In this document: positions 4,674-48,578 of the stretch, piece by piece | Layout of the letters: each line of letters begins with the position of its first letter | Numbering within the stretch: position 1 is the first letter of the stretch | IMG/VR virus record: IMGVR_UViG_3300025161_000004 | Span: 182,769-246,768 of that record | DNA: 64,000 bases | Direction: 5' to 3' (one strand) | Notes under the pieces: model-generated | What the model was told of the DNA's origin: nothing | What the model saw: the letters and a program-made list of their open reading frames with translations, nothing else | The model's database searches: none | Translations under genes and position numbers: made by a program

Positions 4674-4787
4674 ATGGCAAAGACACCACCGAAACCAACA
4701 GGTAATCGTATTATAGATTTAATTACTATTGTAAATAATTCAAGCTGGATTTCTAAAGTAAAAGCAGTTCTTCTATTAAAGAAATAG
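4674..4787 (+). CDS. 37 aa small protein
   Basis: MAKTPPKPTGNRIIDLITIVNNSSWISKVKAVLLLKK, TATATTTG promoter upstream. Confidence 0.45.
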   Translation: MAKTPPKPTGNRIIDLITIVNNSSWISKVKAVLLLKK

Positions 4788-4861
4788 TAATTCTGCTCAG
4801 ATTCGAACTGAGAACTTAACTTTCAGAGAGTTATGTGTTTGACCAATTACACCACAGAATA
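4788..4861 (-). tRNA. tRNA-Gln(CTG)
   Basis: Cloverleaf; anticodon arm TAACT-CTCTGAA-AGTTA; T loop TTCGAAT. Confidence 0.85.
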
Positions 4862-4869
4862 ATATAAAG

Positions 4870-4941
4870 GGTGAAAGGTCGGTTACGATCCGACGACTCC
4901 ATTTTCACAGAATGGTATGTTACCATTACACCACAATCACC
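4870..4941 (-). tRNA. tRNA-His(GTG) with encoded G-1 and C73
   Basis: CCATT-CTGTGAA-AATGG; T loop ATCGTAA (A54/T58 swap). Confidence 0.8.
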
Positions 4942-4945
4942 ATAT

Positions 4946-5020
4946 TGGATGTCGTGGATGGACTTGAACCATCACTTTCAGAGTCAAAGTCTGAAGTACT
5001 ATTCATTATACTACACGACA
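4946..5020 (-). tRNA. tRNA-Gln(TTG), CCA encoded
   Basis: TCAGA-CTTTGAC-TCTGA; acceptor TGTCGTG/CACGACA. Confidence 0.9.
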
Positions 5021-5091
5021 ATATAGCTTTCAAAAAAATAATTCATATTTATCACTTCTACTTAAAGATATAACTCACATAATAAGTATTG

Positions 5092-5166
5092 TCGAGTAGG
5101 CTGGATTCGAACCAGCGACCTCTTGCTCCCAAAGCAAGTGCGTTGACCTGACTACGCTACTACTCG
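5092..5166 (-). tRNA. tRNA-Pro(TGG)
   Basis: CTTGC-TTTGGGA-GCAAG; acceptor CGAGTAG/CTACTCG. Confidence 0.9.
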
Positions 5167-5208
5167 TTTTATCAAATCTCTATTGATTACACAAAATCAA
5201 TATTTGTG

Positions 5209-5284
5209 TCGGGTAAGCAGGATTTGAACCTGCGATCTCCTGAGTCCAAGTCAGGCGAGAACGACCAAACTTCTCCATTACCCG
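5209..5284 (-). tRNA. tRNA-Pro(TGG), second copy
   Basis: CCTGA-CTTGGAC-TCAGG; acceptor CGGGTAA/TTACCCG. Confidence 0.9.
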
Positions 5285-5314: not shown

Positions 5315-5350
5315 AAATCAAAAACCCAAGCAAATTGCTTGGGTTTTCTT
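5315..5350 (-). terminator. Attenuator terminator of tRNA operon 1
   Basis: AAAACCCAAGC-AATTT-GCTTGGGTTTTTGATTTT on the minus strand. Confidence 0.85.
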
Positions 5351-5373
5351 ATAATATCCTAATTTGGATTACT

Positions 5374-5457
5374 TTAGGATATGTGTATAGTTTGCCCAAG
5401 CAACAGCTTTTGTAGCTGATGTTTGGGTTGTGGTACTATAAACACATCCATTTTCAT
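5374..5457 (-). CDS. Leader peptide 1 (Pro/Gln/His sensing), 27 aa
   Basis: MKMDVFIVPQPKHQLQKLLLGQTIHIS; contains TTGCTTGGG, complementary to the terminator 5' arm. Confidence 0.85.
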   Translation of the reverse strand: MKMDVFIVPQPKHQLQKLLLGQTIHIS

Positions 5458-5474
5458 TTCTTTAAAATTTTACA

Positions 5475-5504
5475 CAAAGTTATAACTAAATACGTTAATG
5501 TCAA
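5475..5504 (-). promoter_or_regulatory. Promoter of tRNA operon 1
   Basis: TTGACA...GTATTTA...TAACTTTG (Bacteroidota -7 TAnnTTTG). Confidence 0.7.
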
Positions 5505-5527: not shown

Positions 5528-6532
5528 TTATTCTTCGAATGCTCTATCAATATCGTCGTTTCTGAGGTCATAAAAAACATCATCAGCTATTTCTTTTAAC
5601 TTCCTTCTATTTGGTTGACCAGTTAAAATACCATTAATTAAATTAACAAACTCATTATTTTCAGATGGTACTTTATAGAGTTCTTGAAGAAAATACAATA
5701 AAAAATCGGGATACCGATCCAAATATTGTTCAAAGTTATCAATAACATAATCACGTATTTTACTATAAATATCTCTACCGTTTATAATATCATCAAATTC
5801 ACTATCAATGGTATCGGTATATTTAACAAGTTCGGTGTTTTTTTCTTTATCTAATTCAAATCCTTCAATAGAGATAATTTCGAAAAGTGCTTTAGTTATT
5901 TCATGTACCAATACAGGAAATGTTTGTGCTCTCGCAATAATTCTATACACACCATTATTGTATGAGTACGTTGAAGAGCCCGCTGCCATTCCTTGCCTAT
6001 TACTCATAATAGCCATATTGGCTAGTTGATTTTTATCTGCCAAGTGATATATAATATCGTTCGACTTACCCAACTCATCATACATACTAATCAAATTAGG
6101 GTCTATGGCATCTAATCTATCCTTGAGCATGTGAAATATACCATGAGTTGACACTGCAGAACCCTGTGTAATTGCGTTAATTATTCTTCTTTTGTATGCA
6201 GGGTTTTTAAATTCATCAGGAAGGGTTTCTTTTGGTTTTCTTCTTTCGGGTGCATTTACTGTTACATTAGAGCTTAATTTTGCATCAATTTCAATACCAA
6301 ATTTCTCAATAATTGGAAATTGTTCTTTCACTAATTCGATAGCTAAATTTTCCAATTCTTCTTTATGCTGATTTTCTATCTGTTTAACTTGATGTAAATT
6401 TCTCATTACATTACTACCGAGTTGATGTAATGATTGACCTCTCGCAATTTCTTGACTTCTTCTTTTTAGATCTTGTAGATAGTTTGGATCTAAGAAGTCT
6501 TCGTAGTCAACTTCTTTTAATTGTTTTTTCAT
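5528..6532 (-). CDS. Hypothetical protein
   Basis: 334 aa ORF coupled to the upstream ORF. Confidence 0.85.
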   Translation of the reverse strand: MKKQLKEVDYEDFLDPNYLQDLKRRSQEIARGQSLHQLGSNVMRNLHQVKQIENQHKEELENLAIELVKEQFPIIEKFGIEIDAKLSSNVTVNAPERRKPKETLPDEFKNPAYKRRIINAITQGSAVSTHGIFHMLKDRLDAIDPNLISMYDELGKSNDIIYHLADKNQLANMAIMSNRQGMAAGSSTYSYNNGVYRIIARAQTFPVLVHEITKALFEIISIEGFELDKEKNTELVKYTDTIDSEFDDIINGRDIYSKIRDYVIDNFEQYLDRYPDFLLYFLQELYKVPSENNEFVNLINGILTGQPNRRKLKEIADDVFYDLRNDDIDRAFEE

Positions 6533-6789: not shown

Positions 6790-6892
6790 AATTAAAATAT
6801 ATTAAAGTATATTAGTAAATACTGCTTAAATATATAAAAAATTATACTTTAAGTTATCAAAAGGGTATTTATGTATAGTGTTTGTACGTAAT

Positions 6893-10936: not shown

Positions 10937-11029
10937 ATGGAAAACTTAATATTAGATATGGCAGTCGTAGCAGAAGCGTTGGTTTTAGACGCTGAGTGGA
11001 ATTGTATTGGGTTTTCTATTAAGAGATAA
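10937..11029 (+). CDS. Leader peptide 2 (Glu/Leu/Asp/Met/Ala/Val/Trp sensing), 30 aa
   Basis: MENLILDMAVVAEALVLDAEWNCIGFSIKR; GGGTTTTCTATT antiterminator segment. Confidence 0.88.
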   Translation: MENLILDMAVVAEALVLDAEWNCIGFSIKR

Positions 11030-11053
11030 TTGAATTTAAAATTATACAAATAG

Positions 11054-11090
11054 AAAACCCGATCACAAAAAAGATCGGGTTTTTTGTTTT
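11054..11090 (+). terminator. Attenuator terminator of tRNA operon 2
   Basis: AAAACCCGATC-ACAAAAAA-GATCGGGTTTTTTGTTTT. Confidence 0.9.
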
Positions 11091-32527: not shown

Positions 32528-32565
32528 TTTTTTAAAAAAAAAATAAGTTTTTTTTGATTTAAAAG

Positions 32566-32583
32566 TATTTAGTACTATATTTG
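32566..32583 (+). promoter_or_regulatory. Promoter of tRNA operon 3
   Basis: GTATTTA, then TATATTTG at 32576-32583. Confidence 0.7.
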
Positions 32584-32599
32584 CAAAATATTTAAGGGA

Positions 32600-32668
32600 A
32601 TGATAACTATTAAGAAATATTATTATAAAAAGTCTTCAAAAGTGAAGATCAGTAATACTATATCTTAA
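32600..32668 (+). CDS. Leader peptide 3 (Lys/Tyr sensing), 22 aa
   Basis: MITIKKYYYKKSSKVKISNTIS; GTGAAGATCAG antiterminator segment. Confidence 0.9.
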   Translation: MITIKKYYYKKSSKVKISNTIS

Positions 32669-32685
32669 CAGTAATATAAAAAAAT

Positions 32686-32728
32686 AAAAACCCTGATCTT
32701 CACAAAAAGATCAGGGTTTTTATTTTTT
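32686..32728 (+). terminator. Attenuator terminator of tRNA operon 3
   Basis: AAAAACCCTGATCTT-CACAAA-AAGATCAGGGTTTTTATTTTTT, abutting tRNA-Tyr. Confidence 0.92.
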
Positions 32729-32812
32729 GGGAGTGCGCTAACGTTGGAGTGTTAGGCTTGTCTGTAAAACAAGTGCCTGTTGGCTTAGTAGGTTCGAATC
32801 CTACCACTCCCA
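32729..32812 (+). tRNA. tRNA-Tyr(GTA)
   Basis: CTTGT-CTGTAAA-ACAAG; long variable arm. Confidence 0.9.
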
Positions 32813-32906: not shown

Positions 32907-32993
32907 CCCCTCTTAGCTCTAATTGGCGAGTCGAAAGACGAGAGCTTCTGACTTTTAATCAGAAGGTTGCTGGTTCGAATCCAGCAGAGGGGA
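32907..32993 (+). tRNA. tRNA-Lys(TTT) with expanded D loop
   Basis: TCTGA-CTTTTAA-TCAGA; 22-nt D loop containing a GTC-GAAA-GAC hairpin. Confidence 0.85.
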
Positions 32994-33404
32994 CAAAAAA
33001 AATATTTTTTATTATAATTATCTTTGATAACCATTGTAAGACATATAGTATTTTATACCAGTTCTTATTTACGTAAAAGTTATATAGTATTGAATATTAT
33101 TCAAATTAATGTGTTTTAGTGTTTAGCTTTTTTATTTATATTTGTACTTATAGAAATAAGTTATTATGAATAAAGTGATTGAAAAAGCAAAAACGATAAT
33201 TATATCATTAATTTCATATGAGGTTGCAAGTAAAAAATTTGGTTTTAGATTATATTCTAAAAAGTTTATCGATAATCAAGTTAATCGATACACCCATATC
33301 TAAAGGGATGATTATATTATTTTTTTCGTGTCTTGAATTATCTAATATATTCAATTGACAAATTGAAACTACTGATATATATTTGTTTTTTTAGTTTAAA
33401 ATCT

Positions 33405-39330: not shown

Positions 39331-39387
39331 ATAAAAATGAACTTTTTCTAAAAAAGAATGTATTTAATAATATATTACGATAAAACT

Positions 39388-39465
39388 ATGAAAAATATAA
39401 TCACAATTACCCAAATTACAAGGATAAGAGGTACAAAAACCTCAAGTAATGGGTTTATTGTGTGA
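39388..39465 (+). CDS. Leader peptide 4 (Ile/Thr/Arg sensing), 25 aa
   Basis: MKNIITITQITRIRGTKTSSNGFIV; GGGTTTATTGTGT antiterminator segment. Confidence 0.88.
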   Translation: MKNIITITQITRIRGTKTSSNGFIV

Positions 39466-39493
39466 AATTTTTTAGTTAATATCTTTAACACAT

Positions 39494-39524
39494 AAACCCG
39501 ATAAAAAATCGGGTTTTTTTGTTT
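39494..39524 (+). terminator. Attenuator terminator of tRNA operon 4
   Basis: AAACCCGAT-AAAAA-ATCGGGTTTTTTTGTTT. Confidence 0.88.
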
Positions 39525-39960: not shown

Positions 39961-39964
39961 CAAA

Positions 39965-40088
39965 GAAGTGTGTTTAGCTTAAAATGTCCATTAGTAATGA
40001 TAGAGAGAGTTACTAATGCTTAAATGATAGAGTCCCTCGCTCTCTGTAAGAGGTGGATGTAGAAATTGACTAACTACAACACACTTCA
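39965..40088 (+). ncRNA. Structured tRNA-like element of unclear identity
   Basis: 10-bp closing stem GAAGTGTGTT/AACACACTTC; internal 9-bp hairpin CATTAGTAA/TTACTAATG. Confidence 0.4.
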
Positions 40089-40112
40089 TATGATATTACT
40101 ATATATCTTAAT

Positions 40113-40171
40113 TAGTTAAGGTATGAAGTCGATACTTACGAGATTACGGGTTCAAATTCAGTCTTGACTAC
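40113..40171 (+). pseudogene. tRNA remnant lacking the anticodon arm
   Basis: TAGTTAAG/CTTGACTA acceptor, GTAT/ATAC D stem, GGTTCAAAT loop. Confidence 0.4.
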
Positions 40172-40202
40172 TAAGTGGGTTATGTGGAATTTCTTTCAAC
40201 AT

Positions 40203-42299: not shown

Positions 42300-42319
42300 C
42301 GTATTTATGTGTATATTTG
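42300..42319 (+). promoter_or_regulatory. Promoter of tRNA operon 5
   Basis: CGTATTTAT, then TATATTTG at 42312-42319. Confidence 0.7.
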
Positions 42320-42338: not shown

Positions 42339-42458
42339 ATGAAATTTTTAAATCTAAATAATAATCCTTCGAACCTGAATAGTAATTTTATATCAGGGAA
42401 TATTTTTCTTGGTACTTGTCAAGAGAAGTCGGGTTATTCTTTAGATTTTGGTGGATGA
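42339..42458 (+). CDS. Leader peptide 5 (Phe/Leu/Asn/Ser/Ile/Gly/Cys sensing), 39 aa
   Basis: MKFLNLNNNPSNLNSNFISGNIFLGTCQEKSGYSLDFGG; GTCGGGTTATTCTT antiterminator segment. Confidence 0.88.
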   Translation: MKFLNLNNNPSNLNSNFISGNIFLGTCQEKSGYSLDFGG

Positions 42459-42485
42459 TAAACTAAAACAACTAAAGAAATCAAG

Positions 42486-42516
42486 AAAACCCGACACAAA
42501 AGTCGGGTTTTTTATT
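42486..42516 (+). terminator. Attenuator terminator of tRNA operon 5
   Basis: AAAACCCGAC-ACAAAA-GTCGGGTTTTTTATT. Confidence 0.9.
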
Positions 42517-43039: not shown

Positions 43040-43110
43040 GCCCGAATGGTGTAAATAGTAGCATACTTGCTACGCAGCAAGAGGTGTTGGTTCAAGTCCA
43101 ACTTCGGGCC
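43040..43110 (+). pseudogene. Atypical tRNA with a 6-nt anticodon loop (Arg ACG-like)
   Basis: CTTGC-TACGCA-GCAAG; D loop lacks GG; acceptor and T stems intact. Confidence 0.5.
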
Positions 43111-47690: not shown

Positions 47691-47764
47691 GTAACCAAGA
47701 TGATTAAATTTTCGTATAATACAACAAATACGATCCATTAGCATAGTGGTTAATGTAGGACTCT
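47691..47764 (+). repeat. Second copy of the direct repeat (intact tRNA 5' half)
   Basis: See 45964-46036. Confidence 0.85.
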
Positions 47765-47803
47765 CTAAAAGTCTTGAGGTGGGTTCGATTCCCACATGGA
47801 TCA
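47732..47803 (+). tRNA. Amber suppressor tRNA(CTA)
   Basis: GATCCAT/ATGGATC acceptor; GGACT-CTCTAAA-AGTCT; GTGGG-TTCGATT-CCCAC. Confidence 0.88.
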
Positions 47804-47932
47804 CAAAAATTTATTAAATATGATCTTAAAGATATATCACAACACCAATCGGAAGGTTGAATATGAACTGTGGGCTGTGGTGTTTTTATTTAAAAATCAT
47901 AAAAAATAACTTAACAATTTGAAACTTTTTAA

Positions 47933-47970: not shown

Positions 47971-48324
47971 ATGAAAAGGTAGATATCTAAACTAATTACT
48001 ATAACCAGACAGGATTTACCTATTGGTTATCAAATTGCACAATGCTGCCATTCTGTTGCAGATTTTGCGTACTATCAACCAGAATTATTTAAATATTGGA
48101 GAGAAAATTCTAACTATAAAATATGTCTCTCTGTTAAAGACGAACAATCTCTAATCAAACTTCATAAAAAACTTATTGATAAAGGCGCACAAGTTGTCGC
48201 ATTTATTGAACCTGATTTACAAAATCAAATGACGGCAATTACCTTCTATGGTACTCCTGAGTATCAGAAAGTAACATCATATCTACCACTTGCAGGCAAA
48301 CAATTAAACCATAATATACTATGA
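47971..48324 (+). CDS. Pth2-like peptidyl-tRNA hydrolase with in-frame TAG at codon 4 (missed by the ORF track)
   Basis: ATG AAA AGG TAG ATA...; readthrough gives 117 aa with TRQDL..GYQIAQ..HS...W...K..LSVKDE..L...F.EPDL.NQ.TAI...YLPL. Confidence 0.8.
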
Positions 48325-48578
48325 AATAGATAGTCGATTCAAATCAGAAAGAAGTGATTGTATTCCACTTTAACAAGAAACATTTGGAGGATCCAAATAT
48401 TCCTATGTGGACAATCAAACATAAAGGTAAAACCTATTATGTACATCACTTAACAAGCTATATTGGATTTTCGACAAAAGAAACTCCAGATAATGAGCAT
48501 ACTAAAGGTAGTTTAAAATTTAAAGGTAAATTAAAGATATATGAAAAAGATAATCAGATACTTGCAGAGATAAGCTAA
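48321..48578 (+). CDS. Hypothetical protein with in-frame TAG at codon 3
   Basis: ATG overlaps the upstream TGA (ATGA); ATG AAA TAG ATA GTC... is in frame with ORF 48354-48578. Confidence 0.7.

Follow-up and report, generated by a model that had tools for sequence, protein, structure and literature searches.

How does a large phage control the expression of its own tRNA genes? In a 247-kb phage, the tRNA genes for proline, glutamine and histidine are preceded by a short open reading frame (ORF) that is rich in proline, glutamine and histidine codons and by a predicted switchable terminator, and four more such units precede the other tRNA clusters in the analyzed window (the whole stretch of 64,000 nucleotides). 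This arrangement suggests that the phage makes these tRNAs only when ribosomes run short of them. No earlier description of this kind of control for tRNA genes was found in our literature searches. The first-pass annotation of this locus proposed that stalling of a ribosome on the Pro/Gln/His codons frees a segment, region 2, that then blocks the terminator. The sequence statements in that annotation are confirmed, and every computational test that could be applied agrees with the proposed interpretation although, in the absence of any experimental or expression data, it remains a prediction.

Anatomy of the leader region

The elements of the Pro/Gln/His unit (unit 1) are as follows.
5475–5504, minus strand: promoter-like site, TTGACA (5504–5499), then GTATTTA-N4-TAACTTTG (5493–5475)
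5374–5457, minus strand: leader ORF of 27 codons plus TAA, MKMDVFIVPQPKHQLQKLLLGQTIHIS, with the ATG at 5457 and the stop codon at 5376–5374
5410–5433, minus strand: regulatory codon run, codons 9–16, CCA CAA CCC AAA CAT CAG CTA CAA (PQPKHQLQ)
5414–5449, minus strand: 5' strand of a long predicted anti-antiterminator hairpin (P1), including region 1 (5427–5414)
5377–5408, minus strand: 3' strand of P1, containing region 2 (core TTGCTTGGG, 5403–5395), which can pair either with region 1 or with the terminator 5' arm
5354–5382, minus strand: inner hairpin ATATCCTAA/TTAGGATAT, predicted to form only in the antiterminated state, in which it closes the loop of the 2:3 helix; its 5' arm contains the leader stop codon
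5314–5348, minus strand: intrinsic terminator, AAAACCCAAGCA-ATT-TGCTTGGGTTTT plus T-tract, with the core arms at 5343–5336 and 5332–5325
4787–5284, minus strand: tRNA operon, tRNA-Pro(UGG) 5284–5208, tRNA-Pro(UGG) 5166–5091, tRNA-Gln(UUG) 5020–4946, tRNA-His(GUG) 4940–4869 and tRNA-Gln(CUG) 4861–4787

The tRNA assignments made with ARAGORN and Rfam agree. The -7 element of the promoter-like site is of the Bacteroidota TAnnTTTG type (PMC7366714), and the exact motif GTATTTA-N4-TAnnTTTG occurs in the window only at three of the five leader units. The leader ORF has no Shine–Dalgarno sequence but, given that only 1 of the 36 long ORFs in the window has one, the A/T-rich start context of the leader is normal for this phage. 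The long ORFs of the window show no general signal of TAG recoding.

The core of region 2 is complementary at 9 of 9 positions to CCCAAGCAA (5343–5335) in the terminator 5' arm, and the helix between regions 1 and 2, CCCAA..CAGC/GCTG..TTGGG, is predicted in the minimum free energy structure. However, the hairpin that includes this helix is much longer than described in the first-pass annotation, and its base competes with the inner hairpin. Furthermore, two codons of the run, AAA (Lys) and CTA (Leu), are not cognate to this operon, so that six of the eight codons match the downstream tRNAs. The terminator is a 12–13 bp GC-cored hairpin followed by a T-tract, and P1 is present in both the minimum free energy and the centroid structures.

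These features are unlikely to have arisen by chance. The fold z-score is -6.6, and none of 200 shuffled sequences folds as well. Only 11 of 72,897 stop-free 8-codon windows in all six frames reach 6/8 Pro/Gln/His codons, and the binomial tail for the enrichment of cognate codons in this leader is 5.5e-4. A control based on the longest exact upstream complement of each terminator 5' arm was not clean: unit 1 scored 9 nt and unit b (see below) 11 nt, whereas units a, c and d require G-U pairs or bulges, and this control was not used as evidence.

A predicted ribosome-dependent switch

Equilibrium folding of the full transcript always yields the terminator (P = 1.00) wherever the ribosome is placed, and is therefore uninformative with respect to regulation. 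Thus, the condition under which the first-pass annotation would have considered its model refuted, namely, that the 2:3 helix is not competitive with the terminator, is formally fulfilled at equilibrium. The E. coli trpL leader is likely to show the same imbalance (2:3 about -12 versus 3:4 about -20 kcal/mol), so that the criterion has to be kinetic, and regulation would rest on a kinetic window that is postulated rather than observed.

Accordingly, the nascent transcript that lacks the 3' arm of the terminator was folded with a 28-nt ribosome footprint. Without a ribosome, region 2 is sequestered, and the probability that the terminator 5' arm is paired is 0.18. With the A site on codons 1–15, region 2 is freed and the antiterminator forms (P 0.98–1.0) whereas, from codon 16 on, the ribosome covers region 2 and this probability falls to about 0.1. 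The switch is absent in all 300 shuffled sequences, with an observed difference of 0.82 against 0.00 +/- 0.11. With the ribosome at the stop codon, the model again predicts the 2:3 helix (P 0.9 in the window), which would require a steric or timing argument to explain away.

Conservation in related phage contigs

A megablast search of GenBank phages with 11 kb of this sequence gave no match, and tblastn with the neighboring protein gave only two weak hits, both to huge uncultured phages. Homologues were obtained instead by searching for homologous proteins and retrieving the contigs that encode them. Five homologues in other phage contigs (designated L002/L011, L004, L005, L007 and L107) keep the promoter, an ORF of 27–30 codons, P1, the terminator and a Pro/His/Gln tRNA set, and show the same switch zone, codons 7–15. 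In four of these, the regulatory run is the purer PQPQHQPQ (8/8 cognate), and in L007 it reads QHPQQHQPQGQ; the Pro codons vary synonymously (CCA/CCG/CCC), whereas the flanking residues diverge. A pattern scan of viral contigs for PQPQHQPQ gave 65 hits, among which only L107 was a new true homologue and one more (L154) is the L002 contig; the rest are frames of unrelated genes, including a recurring MMPQPQHQPQQYQQSPSS frame in GC-rich contigs with no tRNAs nearby. A looser DNA pattern applied to viral and genome contigs gave no further true homologues.

P1 is present in the RNAalifold consensus, and P1 and the terminator carry 5–6 pairs with compensatory changes, including A-U to C-G and A-U to U-A changes in the terminator. 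By contrast, the core of the 2:3 antiterminator is invariant and so has no covariation support, and in L005 a compensated change within the terminator leaves a mismatch in 2:3. The inner hairpin is partly conserved, without double compensatory changes. In the relatives, the T-tract ends 13–16 nt before the first tRNA, so that, judging from this lack of space for a promoter, the tRNAs can only be made by reading through the terminator.

Matched leaders in four sister units

Four further units in the window have the same design, with each leader matched to the tRNAs downstream.
10937–11089, plus strand: unit a, leader MENLILDMAVVAEALVLDAEWNCIGFSIKR (10937–11029) and terminator core 11058–11079, followed by Trp, Glu, Glu, Val, Ala, Asp x3, Leu, Leu, Met
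32600–32722, plus strand: unit b, leader MITIKKYYYKKSSKVKISNTIS (32600–32668) and terminator 32685–32722, followed by Tyr(GTA) and Lys(TTT)
39388–39520, plus strand: unit c, leader MKNIITITQITRIRGTKTSSNGFIV (39388–39465) and terminator core 39497–39513, followed by Thr, Arg, Arg and Ile
42339–42515, plus strand: unit d, leader MKFLNLNNNPSNLNSNFISGNIFLGTCQEKSGYSLDFGG (42339–42458) and terminator core 42490–42507, followed by Phe, Ile, Ser, Gly, ?, Gly, Ser, Asn, Leu, Leu, Cys

The true assignment of the five leaders to the five tRNA clusters ranks first of the 120 permutations, with a z-sum of 18.5 against 10.7 for the next best. The per-unit binomial tails run from 5.5e-4 to 4e-6, but unit a is weaker, at 0.07/0.01. 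Relatives of units a, b and d also carry matched leaders: in the unit a homologue in L011 the stretch MAVVAEALVLDAEW is fully conserved, and the unit b homologues in contigs L013/L014/L047/L048/L088 carry ..TYYYGKKSYKK.. before Tyr, Lys, Tyr, Lys, Lys.

A model of attenuation and its alternatives

Taken together, these observations are best explained if unit 1 is a ribosome-mediated (leader-peptide) transcription attenuator that controls a phage tRNA operon, a reading that appears likely even though translation of the ORF, actual termination and readthrough, the kinetic competition and the physiological trigger are all inferred, for an unknown host and RNA polymerase. Under this model, transcription starts at a Bacteroidota-type promoter about 10–15 nt before the leader ATG, and a ribosome translates the 27-codon leader while RNA polymerase moves toward the terminator, which lies just ahead of the first tRNA gene. 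If the Pro, Gln and His codons are decoded quickly, the ribosome moves onto or past region 2, or P1 re-forms, so that region 2 is unavailable, the terminator forms and the tRNA genes are not transcribed. If charged tRNA-Pro, tRNA-Gln or tRNA-His is scarce, the ribosome stalls within codons 9–15, covering the 5' strand of P1 and leaving region 2 free to pair with the terminator 5' arm, with the help of the inner hairpin; the terminator cannot form and the tRNA genes are transcribed. Because the products are the very tRNAs that are sensed, this would be a negative-feedback loop on decoding capacity and, given that any one of the three amino acids can trigger it, it would act as an OR gate, with the four sister units applying the same logic to the other tRNA clusters. 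The trigger could be, for example, host tRNA depletion or cleavage during infection, or the codon demand of an AT-rich phage; amino-acid starvation would also derepress the operon, uselessly.

Several alternatives appear less plausible. It is unlikely, although possible, that the attenuator is real and translation-dependent but reads general translation status or amino-acid supply, for example, as a timing device that opens when the phage shuts down or overloads host translation, so that the codon match is only partly relevant. Indeed, in the model, a stall anywhere in codons 1–15 opens the switch, the run in the window tolerates non-cognate Lys and Leu codons, and amino-acid starvation and tRNA shortage cannot be told apart by sequence. 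However, a generic sensor would not need five different matched leaders, and the composition of the leaders tracks the downstream tRNA sets in the five units and in their relatives. Still less likely, the terminator and the alternative hairpins might act without leader translation, as a constitutive partial terminator that damps tRNA output or under the control of a protein or RNA factor that binds the leader, with the short ORFs being incidental or serving another role. This possibility is compatible with the lack of direct evidence of translation and of a Shine–Dalgarno sequence, the lack of covariation in the 2:3 helix and the dominance of the terminator at equilibrium, but the conservation of ORF length and frame, the synonymous substitutions at Pro codons, the enrichment of cognate codons and the location of the cognate run exactly in the zone where a footprint flips the structure argue against it.

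The possibility that this is an ordinary terminator of the upstream 334-aa gene (5531–6532, minus strand), followed by a separately transcribed tRNA cluster, with the ORF and the repeats due to chance, seems remote. The terminator does lie about 190 nt downstream of that gene on the same strand, and the hairpin is symmetrical and could work in both directions. Nevertheless, a promoter-like site and a conserved ORF lie between the gene and the terminator, a competing structure is present, in L007 the module follows a different gene and a separate upstream terminator, and the space between the terminator and the first tRNA in the relatives leaves no room for a promoter; the statistics and the conservation described above further argue against this explanation.

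A broader reading, which we consider fairly likely, is that a clade of large phages, probably infecting Bacteroidota, governs each of its tRNA operons with a dedicated leader-peptide attenuator that spells out the amino acids of the tRNAs encoded downstream. Phage tRNA synthesis would then be switched on codon family by codon family, whenever the decoding capacity of the cell for exactly those codons drops, as could happen after host tRNA depletion or cleavage by anticodon nucleases. This would be, as far as the literature searched shows, the first case of ribosome-mediated attenuation controlling tRNA genes and a natural, modular sensor of tRNA supply. In textbook accounts, bacterial and phage tRNA genes are controlled at promoters (growth rate, stringent response) or simply co-transcribed, whereas a codon-matched attenuator would provide direct feedback from decoding capacity to tRNA synthesis. 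With regard to the open question of why large phages carry tRNA arrays, the arrays would be an on-demand supply, triggered when particular host tRNAs become limiting, which fits ideas on host tRNA degradation and anticodon-nuclease defense. The five short modules (about 150 nt each) would also be orthogonal sensors for the availability of defined charged tRNAs, potentially useful as reporters in translation research.

Relationship to known systems

The leader-peptide attenuators of amino-acid biosynthetic operons (E. coli/Salmonella trpL, hisL, pheL and leuL; Rfam Trp_leader, His_leader and Leu_leader) also combine a short leader ORF with a run of regulatory codons, mutually exclusive 1:2, 2:3 and 3:4 helices, and an intrinsic terminator that precedes the first structural gene and is more stable than the antiterminator, so that the choice is kinetic. 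In unit 1, however, the downstream genes are tRNA genes rather than genes for biosynthetic enzymes, three amino acids would be sensed at once, the stop codon lies far downstream of region 2, inside an extra inner hairpin, P1 is unusually long, and the unit is phage-encoded with a Bacteroidota-type promoter. Nor does it belong by sequence to an Rfam leader family (Trp_leader, His_leader, Leu_leader or Thr_leader): a scan at the gathering thresholds found only tRNAs, and a permissive scan gave Leu_leader at 20–23 bits against a cutoff of 50, which reflects terminator resemblance only. The multi-amino-acid leaders thrL (Thr and Ile) and ilvL/ivbL (Ile, Val and Leu), in which shortage of any of several charged tRNAs derepresses the operon, are the closest analogues of PQPQHQPQ and of the sister leaders, but in thr and ilv the mix of codons reflects the end products of the pathway, whereas here it is the list of tRNA species encoded downstream.

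The pheM leader of the E. coli pheST operon (phenylalanyl-tRNA synthetase) is likewise an application of leader-peptide attenuation to a component of the translation apparatus that responds to the level of charged cognate tRNA, but the product is a synthetase, not the tRNA, a single amino acid is sensed, and it is a host gene. In E. coli K-12, the tRNA-Phe genes pheU/pheV have only a plain promoter directly upstream, with no leader. T-box riboswitches have the same functional goal, transcription attenuation that reads the status of a specific tRNA and controls translation-related genes, but bind uncharged tRNA directly through a specifier codon and the T-box sequence and have no translated leader; no T-box hit was detected here at either threshold. 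Arrays of tRNA genes are carried by large phages, such as T4, large vibriophages and huge phages, and are thought to sustain translation when host tRNAs are limiting or degraded, but in the literature searched, no description was found of such arrays being preceded by codon-matched leader ORFs and attenuators. More distant relatives in this data set (contigs L017 and L019) have plain promoters.

Genomic context of the tRNA clusters

The region analysed, the last 64 kb of the 246,768-bp viral contig IMGVR_UViG_3300025161_000004 (Ga0209381_1000103), has a G+C content of 28.8% and carries 35-36 tRNA genes along with genes for ribonucleotide reductase, ClpP, a Mom-like protein and DNA methylases. 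The only GenBank phage relatives of the 334-aa protein encoded next to the first tRNA cluster are huge uncultured phages of more than 600 kb. Only 1 of 36 long ORFs in the window has a Shine-Dalgarno-like motif. The promoter-like sites have a TTG...TAnnTTTG form, which is the Bacteroides/Bacteroidota -33/-7 consensus (e.g. PMC7366714), so that a Bacteroidota host is likely, although this remains an inference. A shared motif, GTATTTA-N4-TAnnTTTG preceded by TTGaca, is exact only at three leader units (5475-5493 on the minus strand, 32565-32583 and 42301-42319 on the plus strand). Near matches lie at 39360, 33753, 6804 and 6865, with copies that differ at one or two positions occurring at unit c (the leader unit at 39388), before the ribonucleotide reductase gene and in the divergent region around 6800-6880; this may be a temporal promoter class.

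The leader and terminator upstream of the Pro/Gln/His tRNA genes

Every sequence statement of the first-pass annotation, which described a PQPKHQLQ leader with complete 1:2, 2:3 and 3:4 pairing over a Pro/Pro/Gln/His/Gln tRNA operon, is correct. The elements of this unit (unit 1), all on the minus strand, are as follows.

5457 (ATG) to 5376-5374 (TAA), minus strand: leader ORF encoding MKMDVFIVPQPKHQLQKLLLGQTIHIS, with codons 9-16 CCA CAA CCC AAA CAT CAG CTA CAA
5403-5395, minus strand: region 2, TTGCTTGGG, complementary 9/9 to CCCAAGCAA (5343-5335), the 5' arm of the terminator
5382-5354, minus strand: inner hairpin ATATCCTAA/TTAGGATAT
5348-5314, minus strand: terminator, AAAACCCAAGCA-ATT-TGCTTGGGTTTT plus T-tract
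5284-4787, minus strand: genes for tRNA-Pro(UGG) x2, Gln(UUG), His(GUG) and Gln(CUG)

The region folds far better than its shuffled versions (-50.3 kcal/mol, z = -6.6, with 0 of 200 shuffles as good), and windows of eight codons with at least six Pro/Gln/His are rare (11 of 72,897 over all six frames). The first-pass annotation, however, has to be corrected on two points. The 1:2 hairpin is much longer than described: it pairs 5449-5414 with 5408-5377, that is, codons 4-8 and 11-15 with codons 17-27, and its base competes with the inner hairpin. In addition, AAA (Lys) and CTA (Leu) inside the codon run are not cognate to this operon.

A predicted ribosome-dependent structure switch

When the complete transcript is folded at equilibrium, the terminator is present with a probability of 1.00 wherever a 28-nt ribosome footprint is placed. 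Taken literally, this result satisfies the condition under which the first-pass annotation considered its interpretation refuted, namely, that the 2:3 helix is not competitive with the terminator. The same imbalance, however, appears to hold for E. coli trpL (about -12 kcal/mol for 2:3 and about -20 kcal/mol for 3:4), and in attenuators the choice is made while the 3' arm is still unmade. Therefore, the nascent transcript ending at the terminator loop was folded instead. Without a ribosome, region 2 is locked in the long hairpin and the terminator 5' arm is free (mean pairing probability 0.18); with the A site on any of codons 1-15, region 2 pairs with the 5' arm and the inner hairpin forms inside the loop (0.98-1.00); from codon 16 on, the ribosome covers region 2 (about 0.1). 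The Pro/Gln/His run (codons 9-16) thus occupies the 3' end of the zone in which a stall opens the switch. One oddity is that, with the ribosome at the stop codon, the model again predicts the 2:3 helix (0.9), although this helix would have to close a loop containing the ribosome, which the algorithm ignores. Among 300 shuffles of the upstream part, none showed such switching behaviour (observed difference 0.82, compared with 0.00 +/- 0.11 and a maximum of 0.54 for the shuffles).

Conservation of unit 1 in related phage contigs

Five homologous loci were recovered through the neighbouring 334-aa protein and through a pattern scan. All five show the same order, with a promoter-like site followed by an ORF of 27-30 codons, a long hairpin, a terminator and Pro/His/Gln tRNAs.

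Homologous loci of unit 1 and their leaders
L002/L011: 178-kb contig, neighbouring protein 86% identical; leader (L002) MKRVMFIVPQPQHQPQKLLLGDTMYVS
L004: Logan assembly; leader MKKVMFIVPQPQHQPQKLLLGDTMTVS
L005: JGI metagenome; leader MKKVMFIVPQPQHQPQKPVLGDTMYVS
L107: 362,603-bp viral contig; leader MKKIVNVVPQPQHQPQNLLLGDTMIVS
L007: contig binned into a 'Richelia' MAG, neighbouring protein 58% identical; leader MKTIANIQHPQQHQPQGQMLGNSLSTKEVI

The run is thus purer in the relatives, 8/8 cognate, and the Lys and Leu codons of the window copy look derived. The Pro codons change synonymously (CCA/CCG/CCC) whereas the N- and C-terminal residues diverge, a pattern that is expected if the codons are read but the peptide itself does not matter. 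The RNAalifold consensus retains the long hairpin and the terminator, with 5-6 pairs that changed on both sides. The weak point is the 2:3 helix, the core of which never varies, so that it has no covariation support; moreover, in L005, a compensated A-U to U-A change inside the terminator is not matched in region 2. Little variation is expected given that region 2 has to pair with two partners, but the point stands. The footprint model yields the same switch zone, codons 7-15, in L002, L004, L007 and L107, and a weaker one in L005.

In L007, the module is not adjacent to the 334-aa gene but follows the terminator of another gene and has its own promoter-like site, so it is a self-contained unit. 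In the relatives, the first tRNA begins 13-16 nt after the terminator hairpin, and, as inferred from the lack of space for a promoter, the tRNAs can then be transcribed only by reading through it. In the window, the distance is 40 nt because a remnant of the relatives' first tRNA lies in between. In three relatives (L002 5230-5325, L004 2150-2246 and L005 5259-5355), this first tRNA-Pro(UGG) is 96-97 nt long, with a long extra arm, which is unusual for tRNA-Pro; the window keeps only its first 15 or so bases (acagggtatgctgga, at about 5313-5290 on the minus strand) between the terminator and the present first tRNA.

Leader units preceding the other tRNA clusters

The same design precedes four other tRNA clusters in the window, and together with unit 1, these units form one system. 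Each has a GC-cored terminator and an upstream segment complementary to its 5' arm, and each leader is enriched in the amino acids of its own downstream tRNAs.

Leader units upstream of the other tRNA clusters (plus strand)
Unit a, 10937-11089: leader MENLILDMAVVAEALVLDAEWNCIGFSIKR; followed by Trp, Glu, Glu, Val, Ala, Asp x3, Leu, Leu, Met
Unit b, 32600-32722: leader MITIKKYYYKKSSKVKISNTIS; followed by Tyr(GTA), Lys(TTT)
Unit c, 39388-39520: leader MKNIITITQITRIRGTKTSSNGFIV; followed by Thr, Arg, Arg, Ile
Unit d, 42339-42515: leader MKFLNLNNNPSNLNSNFISGNIFLGTCQEKSGYSLDFGG; followed by Phe, Ile, Ser, Gly, ?, Gly, Ser, Asn, Leu, Leu, Cys

When every leader is scored against every tRNA set, the true assignment ranks first of 120 permutations (z-sum of 18.5, compared with 10.7 for the next). 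The per-unit binomial tails are 5.5e-4 (unit 1), 0.07/0.01 (a), 2e-3 (b), 6e-5 (c) and 9e-5/4e-6 (d).

The two tRNA identities of unit b were read by eye; ARAGORN misses the first and miscalls the second. The first (32729-32812, plus strand) is found by Rfam and reads as a class II tRNA-Tyr(GTA). The second (32907-32994, plus strand) is called Leu(gag) by ARAGORN but has the anticodon stem-loop TCTGA-CTTTTAA-TCAGA, i.e. Lys(UUU), and a 22-nt D-loop that contains a small GAAA hairpin (an insertion). The 241-nt gap between tRNA-Arg(acg) and tRNA-Ile(gat) (39962-40202, plus strand) contains a T-arm-like GGGTTCAAATTC and inverted repeats, and may be a degenerate or interrupted tRNA. Furthermore, tRNA-like genes with abnormal anticodon loops are present in the window (43040-43110, plus strand), where ARAGORN reports '???' with a 2-base 'cg' anticodon, and in the relative L011 (5958-6030, minus strand), with a 4-base 'acgg' anticodon; the one in the relative sits directly after the unit-a terminator.

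An automatic survey of 79 related loci found matched leaders in relatives. The leader MENLVLNMAVVAEALVLDAEWDRIGFSDTELI precedes ?, Trp, Glu, Glu, Val, Ala, Asp x3, Met, Leu, Leu, and all 14 codons of MAVVAEALVLDAEW are cognate to that array; MTIFGTYYYGKKSYKKQ... precedes Tyr, Lys, Tyr, Lys, Lys, with the same switch; and MKRIAYILVSSLTTTSRIGEGTFCSDFGRNN... precedes Thr, Cys, Asn, Phe, Ser. In contrast, more distant, higher-GC phages (loci L017 and L019) have tRNA clusters without such modules. The system therefore belongs to one clade.

Proposed mechanism and alternative explanations

The proposal of the first-pass annotation, that stalling on the Pro/Gln/His run frees region 2, is supported by the computational tests available. 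The best explanation, which has fairly high confidence although translation of the leader, termination and readthrough are inferred, is classical ribosome-mediated attenuation applied to tRNA operons: a stall at cognate codons keeps region 1 covered and region 2 free, the antiterminator pre-empts the terminator, and the tRNA genes are transcribed, whereas fast decoding leads to termination. Since the output is the sensed tRNAs, this is negative feedback on decoding capacity. Alternatively, the switch might depend on translation but read general translation or amino-acid status, which is unlikely; still less likely is a translation-independent damping terminator or a factor-controlled switch, and a gene-end terminator with a chance ORF is very improbable. 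Each of these alternatives is weakened by the five-fold correspondence between leaders and tRNAs, the conservation pattern and the position of the run in the switch zone.

The element works like trpL/hisL-type attenuators, and its mixed runs resemble thrL and ilvL. Its logic, the control of a translation component by the cognate charged tRNA, resembles pheM-pheST and, functionally, T-boxes. It is not a member of any curated Rfam leader family, and its targets are tRNA genes, which, to our knowledge, no described member regulates. Full-text literature searches, in which most subscription journals were not covered so that the absence of a precedent is not proven, yielded no description of leader-peptide attenuators before tRNA genes, in phages or in cells; no Phe-rich leader precedes E. 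coli pheU/pheV.

Other features of the contigs

A recurring 18-codon frame, MMPQPQHQPQQYQQSPSS (or TKPQPQ...), appears in at least 11 unrelated viral contigs of about 52% GC (those of loci L094, L097, L100, L103, L104, L124 and others from the pattern scan), with no tRNAs nearby. It probably lies in an alternative frame or on the opposite strand of a conserved protein gene and is unrelated to the attenuator.

In the window, an amber-suppressor tRNA with the anticodon CTA (47732-47804, plus strand) is followed by two ORFs (47971-48321 and 48321-48575, plus strand) whose only ATG precedes an in-frame TAG, at codon 4 (MKR, then TAG) and codon 3 (MK, then TAG), respectively. The piece after the first TAG is a PTH2 peptidyl-tRNA hydrolase, the Pfam match of which starts at residue 3 (E 3.5e-9). 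Although the long ORFs in the window show no general TAG recoding, these genes may need the suppressor tRNA.
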